DNA of 64,000 bases, from IMG/VR virus record IMGVR_UViG_3300017991_005548, positions 186,001-250,000 of that record; one strand, written 5' to 3'. The notes under the pieces are model-generated. The model ran no database searches. It was not told the DNA's origin and saw only the letters and a list, made by a program, of their open reading frames with translations. Shown one piece after another: positions 25,931 to 61,675 of this stretch (the first letter of the stretch is position 1; every line of letters starts with the position of its first letter). The position numbers and the translations under genes were made by a program.

Positions 25931-26794
25931 TTAGCTACCAGCGGTAACTGTGACCTTGGCTACTGCGTAGGTATTGATGATTACAATACCAACTTCCTCA
26001 TAAATTACCCAACCGAGGCGGAGCTTCTTTGGATCGTCTGCTGGGAGGACGGTGATATCCTGACGAATCGGGAATGCACCAACGTACTCAGCAGGAGCGA
26101 GCAAGAAGACGGTATCGGTAGGCATCTTTGAAGATACGTGAATATCAGCAGTAAAGAGATGTCCGAACAAACCAGTTGTAAGAACTTCTTTCTGTGTTGC
26201 TTCATCATAGACAGTCTTACCAAATCCACGAATGTCAGCGTAACGAAGAGCATGCATAACAAGCTTACCTACTGTGAGGTCGTGCTGTTCGATGGTTGCG
26301 AAAGCTTGGTTCAAGGCGTTAAGGGTAAGAGCACCACCAGTTGAAACAACGGTATGTGCGGCATCAATTGCGGCGGCGATAGCGTTGAAGATGTTAAGAT
26401 CTTCTTCCTTCTGAATCGCTTCTTTAGCTTTGATCTGAGCACGGTCTACAATGTAGAATCTACGAGCTTTAATCTCACTCAAGCGAATAGTAGGATTGGT
26501 TGCAATCTCGAACGTAGGAACGAGAATTTCTTCACCTTCGGTAATACCATCAGGTACAGCGCCACGACGAGGAATAACCTGGGCGGTCTGGCGAACGTCT
26601 TTCTCGTAACGTGCATAAGCGCCCTGAGGAAGCTCATCCACCATGAGAAGTTTACGTCCAACTGCTTGATATTCCAATGCTCTACGAATTGGCTCGACCA
26701 TGGCCTGAGCCAATGCTACTCTACCTTCAGGTGTCTCAAGCGCCTGAGCGATAAGAGCTTCTCTTTCTGCATTAACAGATCTTTTATTAATCAT
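25931..26794 (-). CDS. Major capsid protein, HK97 fold, 287 aa
   Basis: E-loop/P-domain pattern (GRKLLMVDELPQG, VPTFEIATNP, GWVIYEEVG); strong GGAG SD; downstream of protease and decoration genes. Confidence 0.85.
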   Translation of the reverse strand: MINKRSVNAEREALIAQALETPEGRVALAQAMVEPIRRALEYQAVGRKLLMVDELPQGAYARYEKDVRQTAQVIPRRGAVPDGITEGEEILVPTFEIATNPTIRLSEIKARRFYIVDRAQIKAKEAIQKEEDLNIFNAIAAAIDAAHTVVSTGGALTLNALNQAFATIEQHDLTVGKLVMHALRYADIRGFGKTVYDEATQKEVLTTGLFGHLFTADIHVSSKMPTDTVFLLAPAEYVGAFPIRQDITVLPADDPKKLRLGWVIYEEVGIVIINTYAVAKVTVTAGS

Positions 26795-28265: not shown

Positions 28266-31200
28266 TTAACGTTGGTCGTTGTCAATCAAGTTGTCATTTA
28301 ACAACTTGGAACCAATCGTAAACGCTCCAGCGATTTTGTCCTGGAAGCTAGGCTCCTGGGCAGGCTGTGATTGAATTACGATAGCTGGAAGACCAGTTCC
28401 AGCAGTTTTAACTTGCTGTTCAGTAGAAGCAGTTTTAACGGCCTTAACTGGGAACATAGTTTCCGCAACTGAAGCAATTTTATCAACTTCAAACTGAGCT
28501 AATGCAGTAACAACATTATCAAATGTGCTCTTATCAGAAGCAATTCTGTTGTTAGCGGCTAACCATGAAGCAGTACGAAGAGCTTCCTCTTTACGTGCTT
28601 CCTTGATTCTAGCAAGTTGTTCTTCTCTTTTCTGTTGTACCTGTTTGAGATACTTATCATTGATGCCAGGCATATCTGACTGAGTTTCCTTCTCAACGCC
28701 CATATAAGCGTTATCGATAGGTACATCAGGCTTAGGTGCGTTAACGTCGATGTTATCTGGTCCTTCCTGTCCCATAGTAGCTTTTGCTCTAGGAACGTCT
28801 GGATTTGCCATCTTTACATCGATGTTGTCAGCGCCTTCATGACCCAAAGAAGCATCGGCTCTAGGAACTCCAGCTTCAACATCACCCTCAACGGTGTCAA
28901 CTTCTTTCATCTTTTTCGCTAATGCAAGCTGTCTCTGAGCCTCTTTGAGGTTTTTCTCAGCTTCAGCAATTACAGTACCTTTAATCTCATTATTGATTGC
29001 AGGCATATCTGATTGAGTAGCTTTCTCAATTCCCATGTAGGAACTATCAACAGCTACGTCTGGCAGACCAGCAGGTGGATTAATGTTATCTGCGCCTTCA
29101 TGGCCCATGGTAGCATTAGATCTAGGAACCTGAGGTTTGGCCATAGGAACGTCAATATTATCTGCTCCTTCATTCATCATAGTTGCCTTACTACGAGGTA
29201 CTCCAGCTTCAACGTCTTTCTCAATAGTTTTGATGAGCTTAGGCTTACCTGCCAACTTAATGTTGGACTCAGCGCCAGAGCGTCTTACTCTTGAGGAATT
29301 CATTGCCAAAGCCTCTGCAAGTGCGTCGGTATCAAATGTTTCCATATCTTCTCCTTCTGGAACTTCTTCAGCTTCAAATGCAACGTCCTCTGCGATGTCC
29401 TCTTCCAAGGCTTCATCACCAGTATTTTCAACAACTTCGAGGTTGTCTCCAGTGATGGTTACAGATTCAACTGCGACTTCTTCTGGTTCTTCAATAATCT
29501 CATCAACCTCTACATCGACTGAGTCGAGTGGTTCGAGATCATCTCCGATTTCAACTTCTTCCAAGATAGCCTGAGCTTTCTTGGCTAAGTTTTCTTCTTT
29601 CTGAATGAACAATTCGTTCATTGTAGCGAGATCGTATTGGCTAAGTGCAATCTTTCCTTCTTTTGCTTCATCAGCAAAAGCTTGGACGTAAATGTTATCA
29701 GATTCTTCTTTAGCGAACTTCTTCTTAATGCAGTTGCAAATTGAAGTTGCTTGAACAACATCATGTCCTTTGCTCTTTTGATCTTCAATACATTCATCCA
29801 TTGGATCTACTTGCATTAAAGTGTCAGCCAATTTTTTCATTTGACGGACTTTGGTAAAACCAAGTCTCTTCAGTTCTTTGCATACGCATTCAGCCAATGG
29901 CTTATCTTTGCAAGGACCGAATCTAGCTACAGTGTTTCCACCATAAGTTCTAGCAATTCTTTCAACGCAGTTAGCAGTTGGGAACGTATCGGCGTTAGCC
30001 TGAGCAGTCTTCAACATTCCAACAACCTTAAGCTTAGAAGCGAACTTCCTTGCTTCTTCTTTGCATTCTGGGCAACTATTGTCAGGAGAAAGATCCCATT
30101 CAACTCTTAACAAGCCGTTTGAAGGATTCTTACTACTAACAATGAGGTTCTTCTCGAAAGAAGTTCCGCATTGTCCGCATTCGCATTTGGTGCGACCATC
30201 GCCGCTTGCGATGACATCACATTTCTTATTTCCGCAAGCTGGGCAGACATCGCCATGGGCCTCTCTGTTAGCGGCAATACGAACAATAGAATCTTTATCA
30301 ATTCTAGTTTGAGCGGCAACTGGAAGTGCTGGCATTTCTTCAGGCTCTTCAGGGCCTTCAACGTCTTCCATACCTTCTTCGCCAACGCTTTTGGTAGGTT
30401 TGATGATTCTAAATTCAATTTCTTTCTTAATGAGAGCTTCGTATTCGGCTCCGCAATTCTGGCAGTTACCGATAATTCCACCGTCATCTTCTTTAGTTAC
30501 ATCAACATCAGATGAACCACACTCTGGGCAAATGCTCCAAGGAGCTTGCTTTTCGCCAACAGTTGGGATCTCATCCTCTAACTCATCCTCATTACCAGTG
30601 GTGAGAGCTTGAAGAGCAGGATCTTCTCCCATTGGAGGAGCGTCAAGACCTTCCTCAGGAGCGCCTGGAGCGGCGACTTCGCCTGCGGCCCCTGGCATTC
30701 CGCCACCCATTGGTGACTGAGCAGTTCTTTTCATCTTCTTATTATTATAGGCAACCTGATTAAGGTTTTCCATTTCAATATCAGCGTCAAGTCCGTCCTC
30801 AATGCCTTCTCCTACGAGATCGCCTTCAGGAACGATTTCTTCTTCAATTGGTGCTACTTCTTCGCCAATCGGAATTTCAACTGACTCTTCGCCAGCATCA
30901 GTCTGGACAGCGATTTGAATGGTATTACCATCAATAGTAACATTAGTGATAGAAGCAAGCTTCATATTTTCAGTTGCTAAAGCGCCTTTAGCAAACTTAA
31001 CGATATCTTTCTTGAAAGTGGCAGAAGTCTTTTGAGAACCAAGTTCTTCGAAATCGGTTTCAATTACGATGTCTGCTCCATCAAGTTTTTCAGGATTAAG
31101 AATTTCTTCCTGAGCCTGGACTCGCTTTCTTGATTCCAAAGAAGCTAGAATTTCTTCTCTTTCAGCATCTCTTTTAGCCTTTTCGTTTTTAACGACAGCT

Positions 31201-33836
31201 TTGGTTGATGCTTCTTTAGTTTCTTTCTTCTCTTCTTTTTCTTCGCATTCTTCATCCTCTTCGTCACACTCTTCTTCTCCAGCGACAGCTTGCTTCAGAG
31301 CATTTCTAAGTTCGTCCTTAACGTTAACTTTTGCTACTGTAGAGGCTTCAGCAAGTTTTTCATCAACTTTCTTACTGATACTCTGTTCACCAAGTTCGCC
31401 ATCTGAGAGAACATCAACAGCATCAATAATAGTATCTGGATTAATAGTGTCATCAGATGCAATTACTCTCAACTTGTTAACAAGACAGTGTTCGACTTCA
31501 GTTGGGGAAGCAGTTGCAACTTTTACGTTTTTGGCGTTCCAATAGGATGATCGCTTCGAAAAAGAAGCAGATTCAGAAGATTGAGGTTCTTCTAACAAAG
31601 ATCCTGCTAATCTTACACGTTCCTTAGTGGTTGCAACGCAGTTGTTCGCAATTTCTTGCAATTCTTGTGGGGTTGCTCCAGTTTCAAGGGAAACCTCTGC
31701 AAACGCTTCAACGACAGCATCCATGTGTTCCTTAGCGGACTTAAATAGAGATGCATCTCTGTTGGCCTGACGTGCCCATGCAGGATCGACATTGTCTAAC
31801 TGCTTCTGGGTGATTACTTCAGGCTCATTGTTGGTACGATAGCCTTCACTATCCAATTGTTTTTGGGTGACAGTATGTTTGTCCTCATCCTTACGGGGAG
31901 ATACACCATTACTATCATTATCCAATTGTTTTTGGGTAATGACTTCAGGTTCGTCATCCTGTCTGGGGTTCAGCTTCAACTCGCTGTCATCCAACTGTTT
32001 CTCAGTGATAACTTCTTTTTCACCTTTTCTTGGACTCGCGTTATCATTGCTGTCCAGTTGTTTTTGTGTGATGACCTGCTGTTCTTCCCCAGTGCGACCG
32101 TGATACAACTCGGATCTGTGATCTTCGAGTTGTTTCTGAGTGATCACTTCTGGAGTTGCAAGAACGGTATTGGCACCAGCCTCTTTAGTTTCTTTACTCA
32201 TTCTTTCTACTCCTTCTCTTGGATTTGTTTTGGCGAATAAATCTAAAAATTGATGAGCCGCTACTTTTGGCGACTCACTGATTAAATTCTTATCTTGATC
32301 TGACAGATCGTCATAGGTCCAAATTTGCATTCTGTCAGAGTTAGTGTCCTCCGCGACGATGATAAATGAATCGTCTCTATTTTTCACTGCGAGTTTTAAA
32401 TTACCAATTTGCATTGATGGTACTTCTTTTATATACTCAAAAAAGCTTTGTTTTTCCTGCCACGAGTCAGATAAAACTTGCATAGCTTTTTCACGTTGTT
32501 TTTCTTTACTAGCTACGGTTCGTCTTTTTCCCATAGATTTAACTCCCGTTTTATTCATTTTATCGCACAGACTCGCGGCCTTTTGCAAAACAGAAGCTCC
32601 GAACTCATAATGATCTACGGCCTCATCTGCGACTCTCCTAATTAAATGTGAACTCTGGGCGGCTGGACGCATAGGTGCGGTAATAGGCATCTGCGGTGTA
32701 TTTACTGGAGGTTGCCCTGGCGCTCCAGTTGTCGTTCCAACTTCCATCGCTTGTTCTGAAGCAACTGGCATTGGTGCGGCATCTCTTGGAGCCGTTTCCA
32801 ATCCCCCTCCTGGTGTTGGTGGTACTTCCCCTGTTGGAGGCATACCTTCTTCTGGAGCGTTACCCTCGGTTCCAGGAACCTGAGATTCAACACTTCCATA
32901 TCCAGCCCCTACTAATTCATCTGACCAAGTTTGTAGACTAGCAATAATATCTACTAAATCACTTGCAAATTCAACTTCAACTTGTTGTCGGTTCTTAATC
33001 AAGTTAACAGCAATGTTCTCTAATGTTTCAAGAACCTGATTAATCTGATCAATTTCTTCCTGACTTGCATTTTTCTCAAGTGCCGCAGTCTTAATCATTC
33101 TAAGGTAATTCTCAACATTGGCAACTCTTGCAAGATAATCATCGTTTGGAATTATACCTTCAATATGGCAACTTGGGCAAGCAGGATCAACAACTCCACT
33201 TAACTCAATAAACTTGATCCCATAATTATGTTCAAATACTGGTTCGTCTTTGAATTCCTTCACTTCGCCAGTTCTAACGTTTCTGGCCCTACCAGTAAAT
33301 TTTCTGCTCTTTCTATTTCTAATATGTTCGCAGTAATCTTCAGTTCTCTCAGCTTTGTTTTCGCAAATACTGCAAGTACTGTATTCAACTGAAGCACCCA
33401 TGGAGACTCCAGTCATATATCCTTGTTCAATACCGCGACAAATATGAGGATAAGCATCTCTATCTACAAAAGCTATTGTATAAACAGCATTATCATCTTC
33501 GTTCCATTCGGCCCAGATGATCTTACCTTTAGCCTTTTCTATATCTTGATTTTCATGATTGGTAAAGAAAGGGACACCTTCGAAACTCTTATAAGCTTTA
33601 AGCAATTCTTCTTTCGAAAATGAATCACCATTACTATTAGGTTCGTCAGCTTTGATTGCTTTAGCCCTGAAAAATAAAGCATTTGGATGCTTTGTAATTT
33701 CTGCTTGAACAATCTTTTCTTTCTCTGAACCAGGCTCTATCAAAACTCTGCCAGAGGCAGTTTTAATCATAACCTCGTCTTCCTTAGAAATTTGCTCTAC
33801 AGGACAAGGTTCGGTTAAAGCAACTTTTATTAACAT
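28266..33836 (-). CDS. Giant prohead protease/scaffold protein, 1856 aa
   Basis: N-terminal assemblin/HK97-type protease (NGDSF, FTNHEN, GVSMG, IELSGVVDPA) with CSIC insert; then repeats, zinc ribbons and acidic tracts; lies between portal and MCP. Confidence 0.8.
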   Translation of the reverse strand: MLIKVALTEPCPVEQISKEDEVMIKTASGRVLIEPGSEKEKIVQAEITKHPNALFFRAKAIKADEPNSNGDSFSKEELLKAYKSFEGVPFFTNHENQDIEKAKGKIIWAEWNEDDNAVYTIAFVDRDAYPHICRGIEQGYMTGVSMGASVEYSTCSICENKAERTEDYCEHIRNRKSRKFTGRARNVRTGEVKEFKDEPVFEHNYGIKFIELSGVVDPACPSCHIEGIIPNDDYLARVANVENYLRMIKTAALEKNASQEEIDQINQVLETLENIAVNLIKNRQQVEVEFASDLVDIIASLQTWSDELVGAGYGSVESQVPGTEGNAPEEGMPPTGEVPPTPGGGLETAPRDAAPMPVASEQAMEVGTTTGAPGQPPVNTPQMPITAPMRPAAQSSHLIRRVADEAVDHYEFGASVLQKAASLCDKMNKTGVKSMGKRRTVASKEKQREKAMQVLSDSWQEKQSFFEYIKEVPSMQIGNLKLAVKNRDDSFIIVAEDTNSDRMQIWTYDDLSDQDKNLISESPKVAAHQFLDLFAKTNPREGVERMSKETKEAGANTVLATPEVITQKQLEDHRSELYHGRTGEEQQVITQKQLDSNDNASPRKGEKEVITEKQLDDSELKLNPRQDDEPEVITQKQLDNDSNGVSPRKDEDKHTVTQKQLDSEGYRTNNEPEVITQKQLDNVDPAWARQANRDASLFKSAKEHMDAVVEAFAEVSLETGATPQELQEIANNCVATTKERVRLAGSLLEEPQSSESASFSKRSSYWNAKNVKVATASPTEVEHCLVNKLRVIASDDTINPDTIIDAVDVLSDGELGEQSISKKVDEKLAEASTVAKVNVKDELRNALKQAVAGEEECDEEDEECEEKEEKKETKEASTKAVVKNEKAKRDAEREEILASLESRKRVQAQEEILNPEKLDGADIVIETDFEELGSQKTSATFKKDIVKFAKGALATENMKLASITNVTIDGNTIQIAVQTDAGEESVEIPIGEEVAPIEEEIVPEGDLVGEGIEDGLDADIEMENLNQVAYNNKKMKRTAQSPMGGGMPGAAGEVAAPGAPEEGLDAPPMGEDPALQALTTGNEDELEDEIPTVGEKQAPWSICPECGSSDVDVTKEDDGGIIGNCQNCGAEYEALIKKEIEFRIIKPTKSVGEEGMEDVEGPEEPEEMPALPVAAQTRIDKDSIVRIAANREAHGDVCPACGNKKCDVIASGDGRTKCECGQCGTSFEKNLIVSSKNPSNGLLRVEWDLSPDNSCPECKEEARKFASKLKVVGMLKTAQANADTFPTANCVERIARTYGGNTVARFGPCKDKPLAECVCKELKRLGFTKVRQMKKLADTLMQVDPMDECIEDQKSKGHDVVQATSICNCIKKKFAKEESDNIYVQAFADEAKEGKIALSQYDLATMNELFIQKEENLAKKAQAILEEVEIGDDLEPLDSVDVEVDEIIEEPEEVAVESVTITGDNLEVVENTGDEALEEDIAEDVAFEAEEVPEGEDMETFDTDALAEALAMNSSRVRRSGAESNIKLAGKPKLIKTIEKDVEAGVPRSKATMMNEGADNIDVPMAKPQVPRSNATMGHEGADNINPPAGLPDVAVDSSYMGIEKATQSDMPAINNEIKGTVIAEAEKNLKEAQRQLALAKKMKEVDTVEGDVEAGVPRADASLGHEGADNIDVKMANPDVPRAKATMGQEGPDNIDVNAPKPDVPIDNAYMGVEKETQSDMPGINDKYLKQVQQKREEQLARIKEARKEEALRTASWLAANNRIASDKSTFDNVVTALAQFEVDKIASVAETMFPVKAVKTASTEQQVKTAGTGLPAIVIQSQPAQEPSFQDKIAGAFTIGSKLLNDNLIDNDQR

Positions 33837-37841: not shown

Positions 37842-40070
37842 TTACTCTTTTGGTGCTTGATTTTGAATAGCCATTTCCTTTTTCATAATTGTCTGCACAA
37901 TTTTACTCATTGCCTGCTGTGGCTGTTTCTCTATCTCACTATCTTTAAACCTTAAAACAGTCCAGCCCATCTGGGCAAGTTGCCTATCTCTTTCTTGGTC
38001 TTTTTGAATCTGTTTTGGAGAATTGTGAAAAATCTCTCCATCTGCTTCAATAATAAGTCTCAAATGAGGGAGGGCAAAGTCTACAGGATGTTCCATATTT
38101 CCTATCATAATCTTATACTGAGGGATAATAGGATATTTAATAATCCCGTCTTTTTGATGTTGAACCATATGATCCATCAATTCTCTTTCAATTTTTGTAA
38201 AAGCGATTCTCCCCTTCTCATCTCTTACCTGTCCATCTTTCCCTTGCGAATAGGAAGATGGTTTTGCGGTCTCTGAACGCATTTTCTTTTGCTCAGAAAC
38301 TAATTTATCTCTGGTTTTCTTTTTCAAAACCTTTCCGCCAAATTGTGATGGATCAGCAACTTCCGCAGTCAATGGCCCTGTTTTTGCCAATACGGGTTCT
38401 CCACCTGTTGGTGCGGCTGGCGCTCCACCGAGATCTCCTCCTGGCTCAATAGGGGGTTCTCCCCCCATACCTCCCATTCCACCTCCAAGATCCATGCCTC
38501 CTGGCATTCCGCCGAAGCCACCACCCATGTCTCCTCCAGGCTGTTGCCCCATACCTTGTCCAAGGGCCATCATTTGAACGGCATCATAGCGTTTTCTTTC
38601 AATTTCTTGATCTGGGTCAATATCAAATGCTTCAAGAACAGTCTGCGCACTAACAAGACCCTTCTCGTACAATTGAATAATAAATGTTCTGTATTGCTGT
38701 TGATCTCTAAGATGCATGGAGTTCCATTTAATCTTAGGAACCAGATACTCTTCTTCTCCCGTCTCAGGATTTGTATCAATAAACCCTTGTCGTTTAGCTT
38801 CTGGGAGATATAGGAAATCTGTTATCCAATCAGCTATTTGACTTCTAAATGTGTCCAACCTGTGAATCATAGCTTCAATACCAACAGAAGCGCTTGCAAA
38901 TGTTGGACCTTCACCATTAAGAAGAGCATTGTTAATCATCATACCATCAAGGACTTCCTGATTGATGAATTCAAACTCATTACTAAGAGTAAGAACTTTG
39001 CCAGAAGCACCCACCCAGTCAAAATCAAATGCATGGTGTGTGACAATGGTAAGGTTAGGGTCATTAGCAGTTTCGGCAAGCTGTGCTTGTACAGCGGCAA
39101 TATCGGCAGGTCCAGCAGGACGTTCATCACTACCGACTTTAACAATCTTAATAGGAACGATTAGACGTTCTGCAACGATCCACTGAGCTACCATGAGCTT
39201 AGTTTTATATGAAAGTATAGGGAATAATCTACGGACCATTCCGATTCCATAACGAGTATATCCACTTTCACCATATTTCAAGTGAGAAACGTTACGATTA
39301 TCTAATCGGATAGGCTGACCTGACGAAACAAGTGCGATTACATCTGGAGAAAGTTTCTCATATCCAGGTGTTTTTCTCTGGACCATATTGATGAGTTCTT
39401 CATCTGGTTTCAAAGCGATAATCGGGTCAGGATTTAAAGGTGGGGTATAGACATCTACAAAGTCAGGGTTAAGGATGACCATTCTTCTGACCGTTCCTCC
39501 CTCATGATCGCAAATAATATCTCCGACCATTCCAGAGCCTCCACAATGCTCACAATGGATTTCTGCAAATGGGAAGCAATCGCCAAGCAAATGGACTTCA
39601 TGACTTATCAAACGACACCATTTAGTCAGTTCGAGTCTTTTTTTGAATTTATCAAAGTATAACTTAATCTCTCTATCTTTACACTCATGTTCCCAATCAC
39701 TCATTGGAAAATAACTGTAGAAATCAATTGCAGAAGCTACCTTGGGTTCGTTTTCATAGAAGAATCTTGCCCATTGATATTGTTCTATTCTTTTACTTGG
39801 GATCTGCCAGTTGATTGGAGTATGAACTGGGGAGAAAAATTGAGGCTGACCATAAATAGTTCCTGCACTTGCTACGGAACTAAATTTCGCCATACCATTT
39901 CCCCATTGGGTACTGGCACCAGTCGTTGGGGCATAGTTTTGTCTTGGGATAGGTCGATATGATTGGTGCTGTGGAACCTCGCTGGTAGCGAGTTTAGCGG
40001 GATCTCTATTTCTTAATGCTCTAAAAGTCTCTTCTAGATTGGTAGTTTGTAGGTGAACTTGCATGCACAC
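37842..40070 (-). CDS. Portal protein fused to a C-terminal DUF559/Vsr-like endonuclease-fold domain
   Basis: VASAIDFYSYFP, LNPDFVDV, LYEKGLVSAQTVLEAFDID portal-like pattern; G/M/P linker; VDFALPHLRLIIEADGEIFH...RDRQLAQMGWTVLRF. Confidence 0.75.
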   Translation of the reverse strand: MCMQVHLQTTNLEETFRALRNRDPAKLATSEVPQHQSYRPIPRQNYAPTTGASTQWGNGMAKFSSVASAGTIYGQPQFFSPVHTPINWQIPSKRIEQYQWARFFYENEPKVASAIDFYSYFPMSDWEHECKDREIKLYFDKFKKRLELTKWCRLISHEVHLLGDCFPFAEIHCEHCGGSGMVGDIICDHEGGTVRRMVILNPDFVDVYTPPLNPDPIIALKPDEELINMVQRKTPGYEKLSPDVIALVSSGQPIRLDNRNVSHLKYGESGYTRYGIGMVRRLFPILSYKTKLMVAQWIVAERLIVPIKIVKVGSDERPAGPADIAAVQAQLAETANDPNLTIVTHHAFDFDWVGASGKVLTLSNEFEFINQEVLDGMMINNALLNGEGPTFASASVGIEAMIHRLDTFRSQIADWITDFLYLPEAKRQGFIDTNPETGEEEYLVPKIKWNSMHLRDQQQYRTFIIQLYEKGLVSAQTVLEAFDIDPDQEIERKRYDAVQMMALGQGMGQQPGGDMGGGFGGMPGGMDLGGGMGGMGGEPPIEPGGDLGGAPAAPTGGEPVLAKTGPLTAEVADPSQFGGKVLKKKTRDKLVSEQKKMRSETAKPSSYSQGKDGQVRDEKGRIAFTKIERELMDHMVQHQKDGIIKYPIIPQYKIMIGNMEHPVDFALPHLRLIIEADGEIFHNSPKQIQKDQERDRQLAQMGWTVLRFKDSEIEKQPQQAMSKIVQTIMKKEMAIQNQAPKE

Positions 40071-42852: not shown

Positions 42853-44877
42853 TTATTCCTCTTGAAATCCTTTGGTCTCTTTGAGCTTCTCAACATCCGT
42901 GACAGAGTCCTCGAACTCAACCTGGATTTCTTCAGGATCATCCTTGTAATAATCCCTATCGCCAAGTTTAAGCTCTCCAGTCGTTGCTCCCTTGACAGAA
43001 CCTTCGCTGTTCTCAAGAACCTTGACGAATGATTCAGTTGTCCATGGAATACCTCGGTCATCACCGTACTTATTGAAGTAGTAACGATGAGCCGCCATTT
43101 CAATCATAAGCATCTCAACATCACGAACGGTGAACTTCTTAGTCATTGCCAATTCAGACAACTTTTCGAGATCCAGACCGTTGATTGCTCTCTGGAAGTC
43201 TTCTTGATCCTCAAAACCAATAACATCAACGCCTCGATTGTGCATTCTTCTTGCGCAAGTCTCAAATGTTTCCATCATACTTGCGGAATCGAAGTTACCA
43301 ATGTCAATGGCAAGGTCAGTACGACCAGAACGAAGCAGAGGTCCAGTGAAATTCTCAAGATGGTTCGTAGTCAAAACGAGGAAGATATTTCTTTTAACAA
43401 AAAGATTCTCTTCCTGATTGTTCTGAAGCCAGTTCATGAACTCACTCTCAACCTGCTTATGAGCTTCATGCATTCCGCCACCTCGATCATTGGTGGAACC
43501 CATAGCTCTGTCATACTCATCAATTCGAATGATAATATGACTGGTTGAAGCGATTTTATCCAAAGACTTTCTCATCTGTTCGGAACCCTGACCAATCCAC
43601 TTTGAATGACATGCATTGATGTTGAAGTCCCAAACATCAATATCAAGCAATCCAGCCAAGTGAACGGGAAATGCAGACTTACCAACACCGCCCTGACCAT
43701 ACAGAACAATAACATGAGGCATTCTGGTTCGAAGATCCTCAATGCTTTTATCGAGGACAGACATTTGGTCTCTTGCCTCATTAATCTTCTTGGCTGATTT
43801 ATTCTTGCTCTTCTGATGGATCTCTTTCTTCTCGTCAGAAAGAAGATCAACCTCATCAAAATCACGCATCAACTTCTGAACATCATAGGTGAAGTTACTG
43901 TTCTTTGGACAGATATAGTCTTCCCAAGGTCTTCCCTGCAACTGAGTCAAACCAAAGCCATCCTTCATCAGGTTCTTATTGATCTTTGTTCTCAGAAGTC
44001 TCAGGGCTTCTCCCATGTCAATGTAGTCCTGACCGTTTGCATCTGTTGTAATCGCCCTTGGAAGGCAATATCCAAGAACATCACAAGCTTCACTGTAATT
44101 CAGACCAGCGAGTTTGCGGATTGTCTGGTTCATCTGAGATTCGGTGATCGAAAGACGAATGTTCTTTGCGCTGTAGCTCTTGACGTAAACATTGAAAAGG
44201 TGTTTAACCTCAAACTCGTCAACAGTACCAATCTCAACAACATCGACTTTAAAAGGGAACTTGAGTGGGACATTCGAAATCAGAACCAAAACACATCCAA
44301 GACGAACGGTTGGGTTTCTGAATTTATCAAACAGGAACAAAGCTCTGGTGTCTACAACTCCTGGCTCTTCTGGTTTGCAGAAATCAAGGCAGAAATCGAC
44401 ATTACTAATCAACAGAATTTTATCTCTGCACCCACCAGCTTCAGACTTTTTGCGAAGATCCTTTCTGGTTACAAGGCCATTCTCTTTTCTCCTGATCTCA
44501 CCAGTTTGTTCATTGATATCTGGCTCAGGATCTCCATTTGGCCCATTCTTGATTTTGTAAGCGCCATAGATCAACTCATCAAAGAAACGAACACTTGCTC
44601 CTTTCCCAGGTCTACCATGCTGTAACTCAACAGCATCAAATTTGGTTGTTCCATTGAAGAGTTGCTCTACACAGAACGTTTTCTTCAGGATGGACTGAAC
44701 GAGGTAAGGATTTTCATGATTGACAACGAAATTGACGATACCAGTTATAGAGATGGAGCAAGTAGACTTCATCTCTTTAATTACCTTATTAATACCTGGG
44801 CTGTTTTCCAGCAGGTAAGGCATTCCAGTTTTCTTCTGCTTGTTGTCTTCTGTGGCACTTTTCTTGTCTTCGCTCAT
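42853..44877 (-). CDS. AAA+ ATPase, Ycf46-like (degenerate N-terminal plus active C-terminal domain)
   Basis: LYGQGGVGKS, KWIGQGSE, IIRIDEYDRA, LTTNH...LLRSGRTD. Confidence 0.8.
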   Translation of the reverse strand: MSEDKKSATEDNKQKKTGMPYLLENSPGINKVIKEMKSTCSISITGIVNFVVNHENPYLVQSILKKTFCVEQLFNGTTKFDAVELQHGRPGKGASVRFFDELIYGAYKIKNGPNGDPEPDINEQTGEIRRKENGLVTRKDLRKKSEAGGCRDKILLISNVDFCLDFCKPEEPGVVDTRALFLFDKFRNPTVRLGCVLVLISNVPLKFPFKVDVVEIGTVDEFEVKHLFNVYVKSYSAKNIRLSITESQMNQTIRKLAGLNYSEACDVLGYCLPRAITTDANGQDYIDMGEALRLLRTKINKNLMKDGFGLTQLQGRPWEDYICPKNSNFTYDVQKLMRDFDEVDLLSDEKKEIHQKSKNKSAKKINEARDQMSVLDKSIEDLRTRMPHVIVLYGQGGVGKSAFPVHLAGLLDIDVWDFNINACHSKWIGQGSEQMRKSLDKIASTSHIIIRIDEYDRAMGSTNDRGGGMHEAHKQVESEFMNWLQNNQEENLFVKRNIFLVLTTNHLENFTGPLLRSGRTDLAIDIGNFDSASMMETFETCARRMHNRGVDVIGFEDQEDFQRAINGLDLEKLSELAMTKKFTVRDVEMLMIEMAAHRYYFNKYGDDRGIPWTTESFVKVLENSEGSVKGATTGELKLGDRDYYKDDPEEIQVEFEDSVTDVEKLKETKGFQEE

Positions 44878-58171: not shown

Positions 58172-61100
58172 TTACGAGTCTTTTTCGCTTAGCTTCTCAC
58201 GTATGGATACTCCAAGTGCTCCGCTTTCACAATGACCGCCTGAGCAAGCGTCTCCAGCCCCGCCACCATAATTGTCTAAATTGCCATATTCATCTTCATA
58301 ACATCCTGACCAGTCAACATCAATATATGTTCTAGTCAGATCTAACCACTTCTTCCAGTTCGCGACATCTTTAAGGCAATATGTCATTTTTCTAACATCA
58401 CCTTCAAAATAGCGATCTGCAAATTGTTTTGCCCTTCTGACCCAATCCAATTTTTCTTTGTAGTTTTCTACATTATGGTTAAGCCAAGCTTCAAGTAGTT
58501 TGTCTGGAGAGTCAGGGGACAATCCTTCGTTTTTCCACTTGATCCCATTTGTTTCAAAATCTCTGGAGATCTTATTTCTTAAAGGATCAACATAGATAAT
58601 CTCTCCAATGCCAAGCAAACAATCACAAGCTTCCCAAAGATTGTCTTTAAATACTCTCAATCCGTCAACAATAAGACCGCTGGCGAATAAACTGCCATCC
58701 CCATACTCTCTGACGATCTCTGTGATGGTCATAACTGCCGTAAAAGGCGCTTGAGGGTAATCTTTGTCCCCAGACATAGGTAACATAGAAATTCCCGCAT
58801 AATACCTTCTATTGCGATAAATGTGGTTAGCAACATCATCCCATTCATGTGGCTTGATGTTAATAGTGTTTGATACATTATGTCTTAGCCAAGGATAAAT
58901 AGCCGTATCATGTCTTGTCCCTGACTCAACCCAATTCTGTTGAGTAAGCTTAACATTCTCAAGAAGAGTTATGGCACCGACCTGATTTTTGGTTTTGGCT
59001 CCATCAGGAACTTCGCATAAGAAGGTAATAACAACATCAGTGTTATTATTTGACCATACTGATTCTTCGATAGCATCTGGGTTATGTTTTTCAAAATATT
59101 TCAGCGGAGTCTCAAGTTTGTTTGCTTGAACTCTCCTGAAATATCTTTTGGCATGATGAGGATGAATCCCAGATGCAGTTCCCAAAACACAACTCGTAGA
59201 TCCAGCAGGCTTAACACATGTAGCTCTTGCACATAAATTGATGCCAAGTATTCCTGCAATCTTCTCATTAGTTTTAAGAATAAGTTTAGCACCCTTCCTT
59301 TGTAATGCAGGATCAAAGGCCATATCAGGATTATCTGCCATACCTGTCATAGAAACACCGAGAAGTGCCTCAAGCTTTACGATTTCCTGAGTGATGTTGC
59401 CCAAATAATGAAAGGTATCATACGAAGCTTGAATAGTGCCAATGATTGCCGCCGCTTTACAAGAGTCAAGAAAATCCTCTTCGGTTTTAACCTTCTTTAC
59501 ATTGATCTCACATAAATTGCAAAATTGCCATCCGCTAAGATATTCATTATTGTCCTGAGCGATAACAGCAGAGGCAAATTCTTTGCGGAATTGATCATTC
59601 AAAGGGAGCTTTGGGACCATGCCGATTTCAACACAGTTATGTACATAAACTCCGTTTCCATCGAACGCATGAACAACGGGAACAGTACAATCATATACTT
59701 TTTCAATCCCCTTACTCTCTTTAGAGGCAACTGTAGCTATGAATTTACTCTTATTTGGTTTTCTTTTATATTGACTCAACAAACTATCAAGTTTTTGAAT
59801 TTTATATGGTTCTGAAAACCCGATCCTATTTCTATAAACCCAAATAGATTCATTTGAAATAACAAGTTCATGGGCCGTTTGGCAAAAATAATCTTTTTTA
59901 CCACCTTTTCCGTCAGGCATTGGTTTAAAACCCTCACCTCTACGGTTTTTATAAACTTTAGACACAATACCAAGGCGGAGGAGCATCCTTTGTACAGTTT
60001 TTAAATTGTTAAGAGAGATGCTGTGTAAACGTATTGACATCCCCTTCTTTAAATCGCCCTGGACAGATCCATCTGCATCAAAATACCCCTGAAGGAACCC
60101 TCTATACATATCTGAAGAACTTCCCTCTATTTTACACCCTATCTCCTTTTCACCACGTTTTATTCCGTAGTATTCTGCCATCTTTTTTAACCCAGAAGAA
60201 TATAACCTTAATTTACCGACATTTGACGTTTGTTTTCCTCCTGTCATTTCTTTATATGTATGAAGTCCTGACATTTTTATTCTTTTGATAGCCATCTTCA
60301 TCATATGAGACCTTGACTCTCCCCAATAGTCAAGCAATGCACTATTTTTAGTAAAGGTTCCGTCCCCAAGCAAACTGCCCAACAACCAACCTTTATCAAA
60401 GGTTTCATGAAACCCTTCTCCCTTCCATGTAAGATTTTGGTGATTATGTAAAACTATTTGATCTCCAACGTTTAGGTCTTTCAGTTCAACCCAACCCTCT
60501 GGAGTCATTATCTGGTGATTACTGGTCGCCTCTATGCAAAATCCCTCTTTAGTTTCTAAACCAAAAAGCTCTTTTTCCCCAGTTTCAAACATCCCCTTTT
60601 TTGTAGTAGGATATACTTGACCATCAACTATTGCTCCAAACTGTTTGCCCAAAAGATTTTTTGCTTTCTTCGGGCCATGATCTGTCATAACCCAAGTGTC
60701 ACCACTAACACATGGATTATAAACGATGTCATTACTTTCTGCCCAAACGAAGCCTGGTTCACCAAATTCTTTGTTCAATTCAATGAATTTCATGAACTGC
60801 TCTTTGGAGGTTTCGCTTCGCACTAAAATAACAGAATTATTTGATCTTCCTCTTTGAGGATTCTCTTTGCGCCAAGCGCCAGTTTTGGCTTTTGCCATCT
60901 CTTCGTCTTCAGGAGAGAATAAACAAATAGATGCACTGCGGCGAATTCCACCAGACAAAACAGCATCAGAGGAATGCATCATGATATCATAAGCATCAAT
61001 TGGCCTAAGACAGTCACCAAACTTACAACATCTATTAAGCAGAACATTGATATTATATAGTGATATTTTCAGTCCATCTGGTCCAGGGGCCTTGCTTCCT

Positions 61101-61675
61101 GAGGAAATTGGAGCACCTTCTGGTCGAATTTGGGAAAAATCGAAGATCACTTCATATCCTTGATATTCTGGGAAAGGAACGTCATCTCCAATAAAAAATG
61201 AAGATAACAAAACCCCGACAGAATCGGCCCATCCTTCGATGCTGTCTGGGATTACGAAAGTCTTAGTCCCTTTAGTCGGGTTGGCTATGCCAGGAAGCTT
61301 CGCGACATGGTGGGTTTGAACTGAAAATCCGATTCCACAACCACAAAGTAAAAGGAACATACCTTCTTGAAAAAATCTTGGTCTGTCACAATACGAGACC
61401 GTACAATTGTATAACTTCTCATGCTTGTCTAGAATTGGTTTCCCCCCAAACTGCAATGCCCTTTGAGATCCAAGAACCCTTTTTCTTCGAACCATTCGTT
61501 CTGCGAAATCCATTTCTTCTTTTAATTGCTCACAAATCTCTGGCCCAAGCTTCTTTCGATGCATGTCAAATACTCTAGTGACTTGTTCTTCCCAAGTCTC
61601 TCGTCTTTTCATCTCAGGTAGGTATTTGGCATACTTCGAAAAACGTGTATATTCTTGAAGTGCTCTGACGGACAT
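58172..61675 (-). CDS. nrdJ: Class II (B12-dependent) ribonucleotide reductase with intein
   Basis: GSQRALQFGG, YNCT, GGIRRSA, split active site NP|CVE, TCVKPAGSTS. Confidence 0.88.
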   Translation of the reverse strand: MSVRALQEYTRFSKYAKYLPEMKRRETWEEQVTRVFDMHRKKLGPEICEQLKEEMDFAERMVRRKRVLGSQRALQFGGKPILDKHEKLYNCTVSYCDRPRFFQEGMFLLLCGCGIGFSVQTHHVAKLPGIANPTKGTKTFVIPDSIEGWADSVGVLLSSFFIGDDVPFPEYQGYEVIFDFSQIRPEGAPISSGSKAPGPDGLKISLYNINVLLNRCCKFGDCLRPIDAYDIMMHSSDAVLSGGIRRSASICLFSPEDEEMAKAKTGAWRKENPQRGRSNNSVILVRSETSKEQFMKFIELNKEFGEPGFVWAESNDIVYNPCVSGDTWVMTDHGPKKAKNLLGKQFGAIVDGQVYPTTKKGMFETGEKELFGLETKEGFCIEATSNHQIMTPEGWVELKDLNVGDQIVLHNHQNLTWKGEGFHETFDKGWLLGSLLGDGTFTKNSALLDYWGESRSHMMKMAIKRIKMSGLHTYKEMTGGKQTSNVGKLRLYSSGLKKMAEYYGIKRGEKEIGCKIEGSSSDMYRGFLQGYFDADGSVQGDLKKGMSIRLHSISLNNLKTVQRMLLRLGIVSKVYKNRRGEGFKPMPDGKGGKKDYFCQTAHELVISNESIWVYRNRIGFSEPYKIQKLDSLLSQYKRKPNKSKFIATVASKESKGIEKVYDCTVPVVHAFDGNGVYVHNCVEIGMVPKLPLNDQFRKEFASAVIAQDNNEYLSGWQFCNLCEINVKKVKTEEDFLDSCKAAAIIGTIQASYDTFHYLGNITQEIVKLEALLGVSMTGMADNPDMAFDPALQRKGAKLILKTNEKIAGILGINLCARATCVKPAGSTSCVLGTASGIHPHHAKRYFRRVQANKLETPLKYFEKHNPDAIEESVWSNNNTDVVITFLCEVPDGAKTKNQVGAITLLENVKLTQQNWVESGTRHDTAIYPWLRHNVSNTINIKPHEWDDVANHIYRNRRYYAGISMLPMSGDKDYPQAPFTAVMTITEIVREYGDGSLFASGLIVDGLRVFKDNLWEACDCLLGIGEIIYVDPLRNKISRDFETNGIKWKNEGLSPDSPDKLLEAWLNHNVENYKEKLDWVRRAKQFADRYFEGDVRKMTYCLKDVANWKKWLDLTRTYIDVDWSGCYEDEYGNLDNYGGGAGDACSGGHCESGALGVSIREKLSEKDS
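59636..60712 (-). mobile_element. Intein with LAGLIDADG homing endonuclease, 359 aa
   Basis: Starts CVSGDT, ends VHN before Cys+1; blocks LLGSLLGDG and LQGYFDADGS. Confidence 0.92.

Follow-up and report, generated by a model that had tools for sequence, protein, structure and literature searches.

In this study, we found that the portal gene in a 64,000-nt stretch of DNA (positions 186,001 to 250,000 of the IMG/VR virus record IMGVR_UViG_3300017991_005548, hereafter called the window) encodes a tailed-phage portal protein that continues in frame into a DUF559/Vsr-like domain, which, judging from its conserved residues, is apparently an active DNA-cutting endonuclease. The source of the window is a ~524-kb uncultured megaphage, a relative of Bacillus phage G. 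Within the clade to which it belongs, the domain was gained once and became fixed, its active site is invariant, it is under purifying selection, and it has diverged together with the portal core.

Gene structure and portal core

The gene lies on the minus strand and consists of a single uninterrupted open reading frame (ORF) of 742 codons from GTG at 40070, with its stop codon at 37842-37844. An alternative ATG at 40064, which has AGGA 8 nt upstream and gives a protein of 740 aa, has been adopted by public gene calls and is the likelier start. An earlier reading of the letters alone (the sequence-only reading) had flagged 37842-38560, which corresponds to residues ~504-742 (the last ~239 codons) and comprises the linker and the nuclease domain. 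It had described one frame running from a portal core through a Gly/Met/Pro linker into a nuclease domain, and the 742-codon ORF bears this out, with the linker at residues 507-575. Coordinates of all parts of the protein and of neighbouring genes are given in Table 1.

The N-terminal part of the protein is a genuine tailed-phage portal, as indicated by sequence homology, fold and head-module context, and its earlier identification as a portal is thus upheld. The PHROG family 16240 ('portal protein') matches residues 63-592 with an E value of 1.7e-47, and the best named relative is gp14 of Bacillus phage G (36% identity over residues 65-493, BLASTP E 2e-88), which has been reported as detected by proteomics and cryo-EM in a multi-omics preprint (bioRxiv 10.1101/2024.12.16.628780). 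A full-length AlphaFold2 model, built on 51 sequences, is confident for the portal core at residues ~90-500. Searching the PDB with this model by Foldseek resulted in 111 matches at E≤1e-3 (best 7.3e-10), and all of the matches listed are portal chains, including those of Pakpunavirus P7-1, lambda gpB, G20c, HK97 and T4.

The portal also carries a short Cys/His insert, quoted earlier as CEHCGGSGMVGDIICDH and found at residues 173-189. All four ligand positions of this CxxC...CxH knuckle are kept in 126 of 126 sequences (one of which has a gap at C173), and the insert corresponds to a 16-aa gap in phage G gp14. The zinc-ribbon insert noticed before is thus real, invariant and absent from phage G. 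Because it precedes the stem helix in the order of structural elements, the knuckle would be placed in the wing. Since it is kept across the clade and is absent in phage G gp14, it was gained along with the nuclease domain.

Identity and active site of the nuclease domain

Profile searches, structure prediction and residue mapping all assign the C-terminal domain to the DUF559/Vsr-like endonucleases, as the sequence-only reading had supposed. Residues ~659-728 match two Pfam families, DUF559 (PF04480, clan PDDEXK; 49.1 bits with a threshold of 20.6, E 5.6e-13) and REase_MTES_1575 (PF18741; 41.8 bits with a threshold of 38.2, E 1.2e-10), and the C-terminal domains of a distant subclade likewise pass the Pfam gathering threshold. 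A profile built from 48 homologous C-termini matches two PDB entries, 3HRL (NGO0050, a DUF559 protein; E 8.9e-11) and 3R3P (I-Bth0305I; E 3e-5). An AlphaFold2 model of residues 576-742 alone has a predicted local distance difference test score (pLDDT) of 84.5, and Foldseek of this domain model retrieves 3r3p, 3hrl, 4oq2 (PvuRts1I), 1cw0 and 1vsr (E. coli Vsr) with a probability of 1.00. A two-copy complex prediction for residues 617-742 gave a score of 0.00, which counts neither for nor against a dimer.

The string VDFALP...IIEADGEIFH, located at residues 663-682, contains the D...ExDG...H motif, whose residues correspond to catalytic ones of the Vsr/EDxHD nuclease family. In the published active-site equivalence, Vsr E25, D51, H64, H69 and D97 correspond to I-Bth0305I E170, D196, N208, H213 and D222, respectively, with an extra acidic residue at the position of Vsr F62 (Taylor et al. 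2011, PMC3239194). By this mapping (PMC3239194) and the 3r3p and 3hrl alignments, the predicted catalytic set of the portal domain comprises E628, D664, E675-x-D677, H682 and D691, in which E628 equals Vsr E25, D664 equals D51, E675 and D677 take the F62 and H64 positions, H682 equals H69 and D691 equals D97. These six active-site residues, together with R694, D695, G702, W703 and R707, are invariant in 126 of 126 sequences from both subclades.

Such invariance bears on the view that the domain is a non-catalytic module, that is, a folded plug, a scaffold or inner-head interaction domain, or a DNA or RNA binder like the Vsr-like domains of the RAP/FASTK type. Its fold matches by Foldseek do include RAP-type mitoribosomal proteins, a DUF559 paralogue in the same genome matches the RAP family, and many PD-(D/E)xK domains have been recruited as binders. 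However, inactivated nuclease folds normally lose the catalytic positions and the conserved residues that follow them, all of which are retained here, and we regard a non-catalytic role as quite improbable.

Among the structural relatives, I-Bth0305I (3R3P) is the best structural match (Foldseek E 6.8e-5), with a Vsr-like core and the same E/D/(E-x-N/D)/H/D pattern. NGO0050 (3HRL), from the same Pfam family, is the best sequence-profile match and has a template modelling score of 0.79 by target. NGO0050 and Caulobacter VsrA (PMC12907096) differ from the portal domain in being small stand-alone cellular DUF559 proteins, whose biochemistry is largely uncharacterised. The fold and catalytic residues are also common to E. 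coli Vsr (1VSR/1CW0; Foldseek E ~3e-3), whereas the Pfam Vsr family is absent among the domain matches at E≤1, and the portal nuclease domain is not a Vsr orthologue. A Vsr-type repair pair with a Dcm-type methylase was considered and rejected because no C5 methylase (PF00145) was found in four large clade genomes (300-476 kb), records that are possibly incomplete. The label 'very-short-patch-repair endonuclease', which public annotation by JGI gives to these portals (others are named 'DUF559 domain-containing protein'), is a domain-level annotation and not the function of the portals.

Distribution, phylogeny and selection

The distribution of the fusion was analyzed among database relatives of this portal and in IMG/VR loci; unrelated portal families may hold similar fusions. 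A word-index search resulted in 412 relatives, the best 120 of which have 51-100% identity. Nearly all of these 120 carry both PF04480 and PF18741, and the catalytic motif is present in 116, the remaining four being fragments or having a C-terminal extension. Two scans of IMG/VR gave 82 loci, in which a hidden Markov model of the domain was used to find in-frame copies. Each of the 69 loci that reach 41% core identity and are complete at the 3' side has the domain as the in-frame terminus of its portal ORF, and five loci 'without' it are cut by contig ends. In contrast to these complete clade loci, six loci at 33-36% identity, namely phage G and G-like contigs, have no copy of the domain within 3 kb, and DUF559 is absent throughout the 497.5-kb genome of phage G. 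The portal copy is the sole DUF559 in three other large clade genomes (300-379 kb).

In a FastTree phylogeny of portal cores, the 74 clade tips and the six domain-less tips fall on opposite sides of one branch (length 1.25, support 0.999), and therefore one gain explains the pattern. Pairwise identities of domain and core are correlated (r = 0.79), a value reached in none of 300 permutations (Mantel test). The ratio of non-synonymous to synonymous substitution rates (dN/dS) of the domain is 0.06-0.17, values that are rough because dS is largely saturated. The sequence-only reading had named a sporadic hitch-hiker lacking catalytic residues as the outcome that would go against it; what we found is a domain fixed across a deep clade with its catalytic residues unchanged.

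These data also bear on a selfish origin, in which a free-standing EDxHD/DUF559 homing endonuclease gene settled at the portal gene's 3' end, was joined to it when the stop codon between the two was lost, and drives against domain-less alleles by cutting them, with no function in the virion. The nearest relatives of the domain are indeed homing endonucleases (I-Bth0305I, phage entries in BFVD named 'homing endonuclease' or DUF559, and the PADLOC HEase models), this portal family attracts selfish elements, its inteins occupying no fewer than five sites, and the same genome holds a free-standing gene with DUF559 and helix-turn-helix (HTH) domains. A homing endonuclease is thus a plausible origin of the portal domain. 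As an account of its present state, the selfish explanation seems improbable: a fixed homing element is expected to decay, yet every complete locus (~45-100% core identity) keeps the domain with an invariant active site and the low dN/dS given above, none of the clade loci seen was an empty (domain-less) allele, domain and core have diverged in step, and no NUMOD or HTH recognition module precedes it. I-Bth0305I, unlike the portal domain, has N-terminal NUMOD repeats, resides in a group I intron and is sporadic (PMC3239194), whereas the portal domain has no such module and is a clade-fixed in-frame fusion. Lacking both a recognition module and a sporadic distribution, it is not a typical EDxHD homing endonuclease.

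Searches of other collections were also carried out. A megablast of the locus against GenBank phages gave no match, and tblastn of the domain against 50,697 GenBank phage records gave five weak matches, none at a portal (three in helicase genes, one in a putative endonuclease and one in a hypothetical protein). Among the matches listed, the structural neighbours in BFVD are proteins of 105-599 aa, mostly free-standing phage proteins labelled homing endonuclease, DUF559 or restriction enzyme, and none is annotated as a portal. Full-text literature searches for portal with DUF559 and for portal with Vsr found no description of such a fusion.

Many clade portals are 1,000-1,840 aa long owing to inteins (PF14528, PF14890 and PF05203). 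The intein sites, at least five in number, lie before positions equivalent to residues ~101, 119, 175, 356 and 392 of the window protein (homologues P0007-P0120; loci L008-L012, L023, L030, L070, L073, L075 and L078), and the 1,841-aa portal ORF of L012 probably contains several. The free-standing DUF559 gene of this genome encodes 291 aa and lies outside the window (~10.1-11.0 kb of the source record; L003:1192-2067 (-)). It has an HTH at each end, matches PADLOC 'homing endonuclease' models as well as the RAP family, and its nuclease domain is ~30% identical to that of the portal. This gene looks like a classical mobile endonuclease.

Linker and basic segment

Between the crown helices and the nuclease domain, residues 507-575 consist of 35% Gly, 9% Met and 14% Pro, and AlphaFold2 predicts disorder at residues 507-572 (pLDDT ~30). 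The distance from the crown to the catalytic motif ranges from 74 to 195 aa among homologues, that is, the linker varies in length. It is followed by a basic segment (residues 576-616; isoelectric point (pI) 10.4) in which FGGKVLKKKTR is conserved and residues 584-601 are predicted to form a helix. Pfam and PHROG searches of residues 507-616 revealed no NUMOD or HTH DNA-recognition domain, the short basic helix being the only element there. In the second DUF559-containing subclade (~45% core identity), the connecting region is completely different, and the nuclease domain is the same.

Phage G gp14 (Donellivirus gee) resembles the window portal in its orthologous core, its long low-complexity tail with a DPSxFG-type motif and a genome of ~500 kb; it differs in its length (648 aa), in having a Gly/Pro-rich tail end without a folded domain, and in lacking the zinc-knuckle insert. 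More generally, phage-G-like portals have Gly/Pro-rich tails of ~150 aa with (D/N)P-x-(D/S)-FGFPG, resembling ADPSQFGG of the window protein. Since these portals are also long-tailed and have a similar motif, the floppy tail is ancestral, and the nuclease was added at its end.

The tail motif DPSxFG(G/F) (window 38316-38351, residues 574-585) is common to the DUF559-bearing portals of the first subclade and the DUF559-less phage-G-like portals (L079 and L081-L084), and is possibly an inherited site of docking or processing within that disordered region.

Possible roles of the portal-borne nuclease

The sequence-only reading put forward DNA sensing, end processing or genome delivery as roles of the domain. 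This list of possibilities is narrowed only slightly by the present data, which speak against a packaging nuclease and against a Vsr-type repair pair. In solved portals, the C-terminus leaves the crown toward the capsid interior. With its C-terminal tail leaving the crown into the capsid, a dodecameric ring should place twelve nuclease domains in each procapsid. The ancestor of this huge-phage clade gained an EDxHD-type PD-(D/E)xK domain once, at the end of the disordered tail of its portal. On the reading that we tentatively favor, twelve domains would lie inside the procapsid, each on a tether of ~110 residues formed by the ~70-aa Gly/Met/Pro coil and the basic segment. The portal would then serve as a head-targeting and stoichiometric carrier for enzymatic cargo. 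The internal proteins of T4 are an established precedent for cargo packaged in the head. The domains would be released from the tether, e.g., by the prohead protease, exit with the genome and, as infection begins, attack DNA of the host or of rivals. Such a model requires that the phage's own DNA be spared, either through specificity or through the absence of metal or activation inside the head. That a nuclease carried by the portal and freed from its tether acts in this way at the beginning of infection is the most likely of the explanations weighed here, at somewhat less than even odds. Somewhat unlikely, in our view, is the stricter proposal that each virion of the clade (phages of 300-524 kb) carries exactly twelve competent nucleases, loaded in fixed number as parts of the portal and either set free during head maturation and ejected before or together with the genome as a first strike, or used for processing of the inner DNA end in the head. 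Both fates, ejection and retention in the capsid, are ones that we infer.

Comparable systems have been described. For PBECR, 2H and InPase effectors joined to portal or MuF proteins, it has been suggested that they 'might be injected' (Iyer et al. 2017, PMC5512222), over half of the MuF toxins are nucleases (Jamet et al. 2017, PMC5576092), and a DUF559 protein, VsrA, damages DNA in vivo in Caulobacter (PMC12907096). These portal and MuF fusions are like the window protein in joining a head-incorporated N-terminal module, which is either a portal or MuF, a portal-binding protein, to a C-terminal enzyme presumed to be packaged and delivered (PMC5512222, PMC5576092). The portal-fused effectors in PMC5512222 are PBECR RNase, 2H phosphoesterase and InPase, and DUF559 or Vsr is not mentioned there. 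The C-termini of MuF toxins are variable, an immunity gene usually accompanies them and their phages are temperate, whereas here the domain is fixed, no immunity-like ORF was found and the phages are huge.

Several points weigh against the release of the domain and its action on host or rival DNA. All members of the clade are metagenomic. No release site was identified: phmmer of the protease against the PDB gave chance matches only, NCBIfam gives just a weak match to an HK97-type 'prohead protease/MCP fusion', and no conserved cleavage site is evident because the linker differs completely between the two DUF559-containing subclades. Unlike the polymorphic MuF toxins, the C-terminal domain never varies among relatives, and the portal gene is followed not by a small immunity-like ORF but by a gene for a 1,305-aa protein. 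Furthermore, a folded domain of ~14 kDa would have to unfold or be compact enough for the portal and tail channel, and an active nuclease beside dense phage DNA would need a mechanism of self-protection, and no C5 methylase was found in the four large clade genomes.

A second way to explain the location of the domain is that all twelve copies stay on the portal and act as an intracapsid nuclease or DNA-end handler, binding or processing phage DNA at the inner mouth of the channel; they might hold or trim the first-packaged end, or release the final stretch by a cut as ejection ends. On this view, the fusion by itself accounts for the location, and cleavage need not be assumed. The basic segment, with its conserved helix just before the domain, and a tether long enough for DNA around the crown would fit such a role, and the joint gain of the domain and the zinc knuckle of the wing might mean that the two share a structural task. 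In function, the nearest parallel is SPP1 gp7, which binds portal and DNA according to the statement in PMC5576092 that cites it. However, binding alone would not need an invariant catalytic set, no known model of packaging or ejection needs a cut inside the head, and phage G and its close relatives handle genomes of ~500 kb without the domain. We consider retention rather doubtful.

The position of the domain at the packaging vertex also raises the idea that it makes the initiation or headful cut instead of the terminase nuclease. The large terminase (TerL) of the window is highly divergent, with a Pfam match of only E 0.0085, which could be taken in favor of this idea; phmmer with TerL against the PDB gave no match. 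Nevertheless, a 621-aa TerL (phrog_2, E 5.3e-28) with its own C-terminal domain is present. The C-terminal part of TerL profiles, their nuclease region, is matched by residues 404-611, and the protein has an 'AHVDPANGG' strand of the kind usual in nuclease motif I. With this region represented in TerL itself, the packaging cuts are probably not the task of the portal domain; in addition, the C-terminus of the portal is on the wrong side of the ring, as the cut is made outside the capsid. Replacement of the terminase nuclease was accordingly rejected, and we give this explanation hardly any credence.

Portals are usually seen as passive rings with a sensor role, whereas the portal described here permanently bears an apparently active nuclease. 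This conserved fusion bears on how enzymes are loaded into heads, how a genome and a nuclease coexist, and what happens in the first seconds of infection by giant phages. If virions did carry twelve competent nucleases, this would represent a new way to load or use an enzyme at the portal vertex, and a mechanism would be needed to protect ~0.5 Mb of packed DNA from the adjacent nuclease. Our results also correct a systematic misannotation of these portals in public pipelines, and the combination of nuclease domain and zinc knuckle cleanly marks these relatives of phage G as a clade of megaphages.

Genomic context

The genes for TerL, the portal, the prohead-protease protein and the major head protein are located on the same strand within 30 kb (Table 1). 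The 1,856-aa protein resembles a known family (prohead protease) over its first ~220 residues and nowhere else. Next to the portal is the gene for the 1,305-aa protein, which has no Pfam, PHROG or NCBIfam match; MuF was looked for there and not found.

Table 1. Coordinates in the window of the portal-nuclease gene, its parts and neighbouring genes
Feature	Coordinates	Strand	Evidence or match
Whole portal-nuclease ORF	37842..40070	-	ORF reading, public gene calls
Portal core, residues ~89-506 (wing, stem, clip, long helix, crown helices to ~506)	38553..39806	-	PHROG, phage G gp14, AlphaFold2/Foldseek
Zinc-knuckle-like insert, C173-x2-C176-x10-C187-x-H189	39504..39554	-	Alignment; gap in phage G gp14
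Disordered Gly/Met/Pro-rich linker, residues 507-575	38346..38552	-	pLDDT ~30, composition, variable length
Basic segment, residues 576-616	38223..38345	-	pI 10.4, FGGKVLKKKTR, predicted helix
DUF559/Vsr-like PD-(D/E)xK endonuclease domain, residues 617-742	37845..38222	-	Pfam, PDB profile matches, AlphaFold2 and Foldseek
Span of predicted catalytic residues	37998..38189	-	126/126 invariance, codon positions confirmed, residue mapping
Codons of predicted catalytic residues	E628 38187-38189; D664 38079-38081; E675 38046-38048; D677 38040-38042; H682 38025-38027; D691 37998-38000	-	
Major head protein	25931..26794	-	phrog_2522 E 1.8e-72
1,856-aa protein with N-terminal prohead-protease domain	28266..33836	-	phrog_18299 E 1.1e-18; NF045541 E 4.9e-5
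1,305-aa protein, next gene after portal, rich in charged residues	33838..37755	-	No family match
674-aa AAA+ ATPase, three genes upstream of portal	42853..44877	-	PF00004 E 1e-18
Large terminase, 621 aa	54097..55962	-	phrog_2 E 5.3e-28, phrog_38
1,167-aa ribonucleotide reductase ORF	58172..61675	-	Ribonucleotide reductase profile in two stretches

TerL shows no detectable similarity to TerL of phage G (BLASTP E 0.22), although the portals of the two phages are 36% identical, and thus portal and terminase apparently have different histories.

The same phage has been assembled independently as 523,871 bp (ENA ERZ27256796) and 524,692 bp (JGI 3300018080), and IMG/VR has one version of 476,248 bp. 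Given the independent assemblies of ~524 kb, the 'provirus' label of the 296,327-bp source record looks more like a trimming artefact than the mark of a prophage. The 1,856-aa ORF is split into 833 + 36 + 957 aa in the JGI assembly and is whole in the ENA assembly. In the ribonucleotide reductase ORF, which matches its profile in two stretches, a foreign piece at residues ~343-413 may be an intein.

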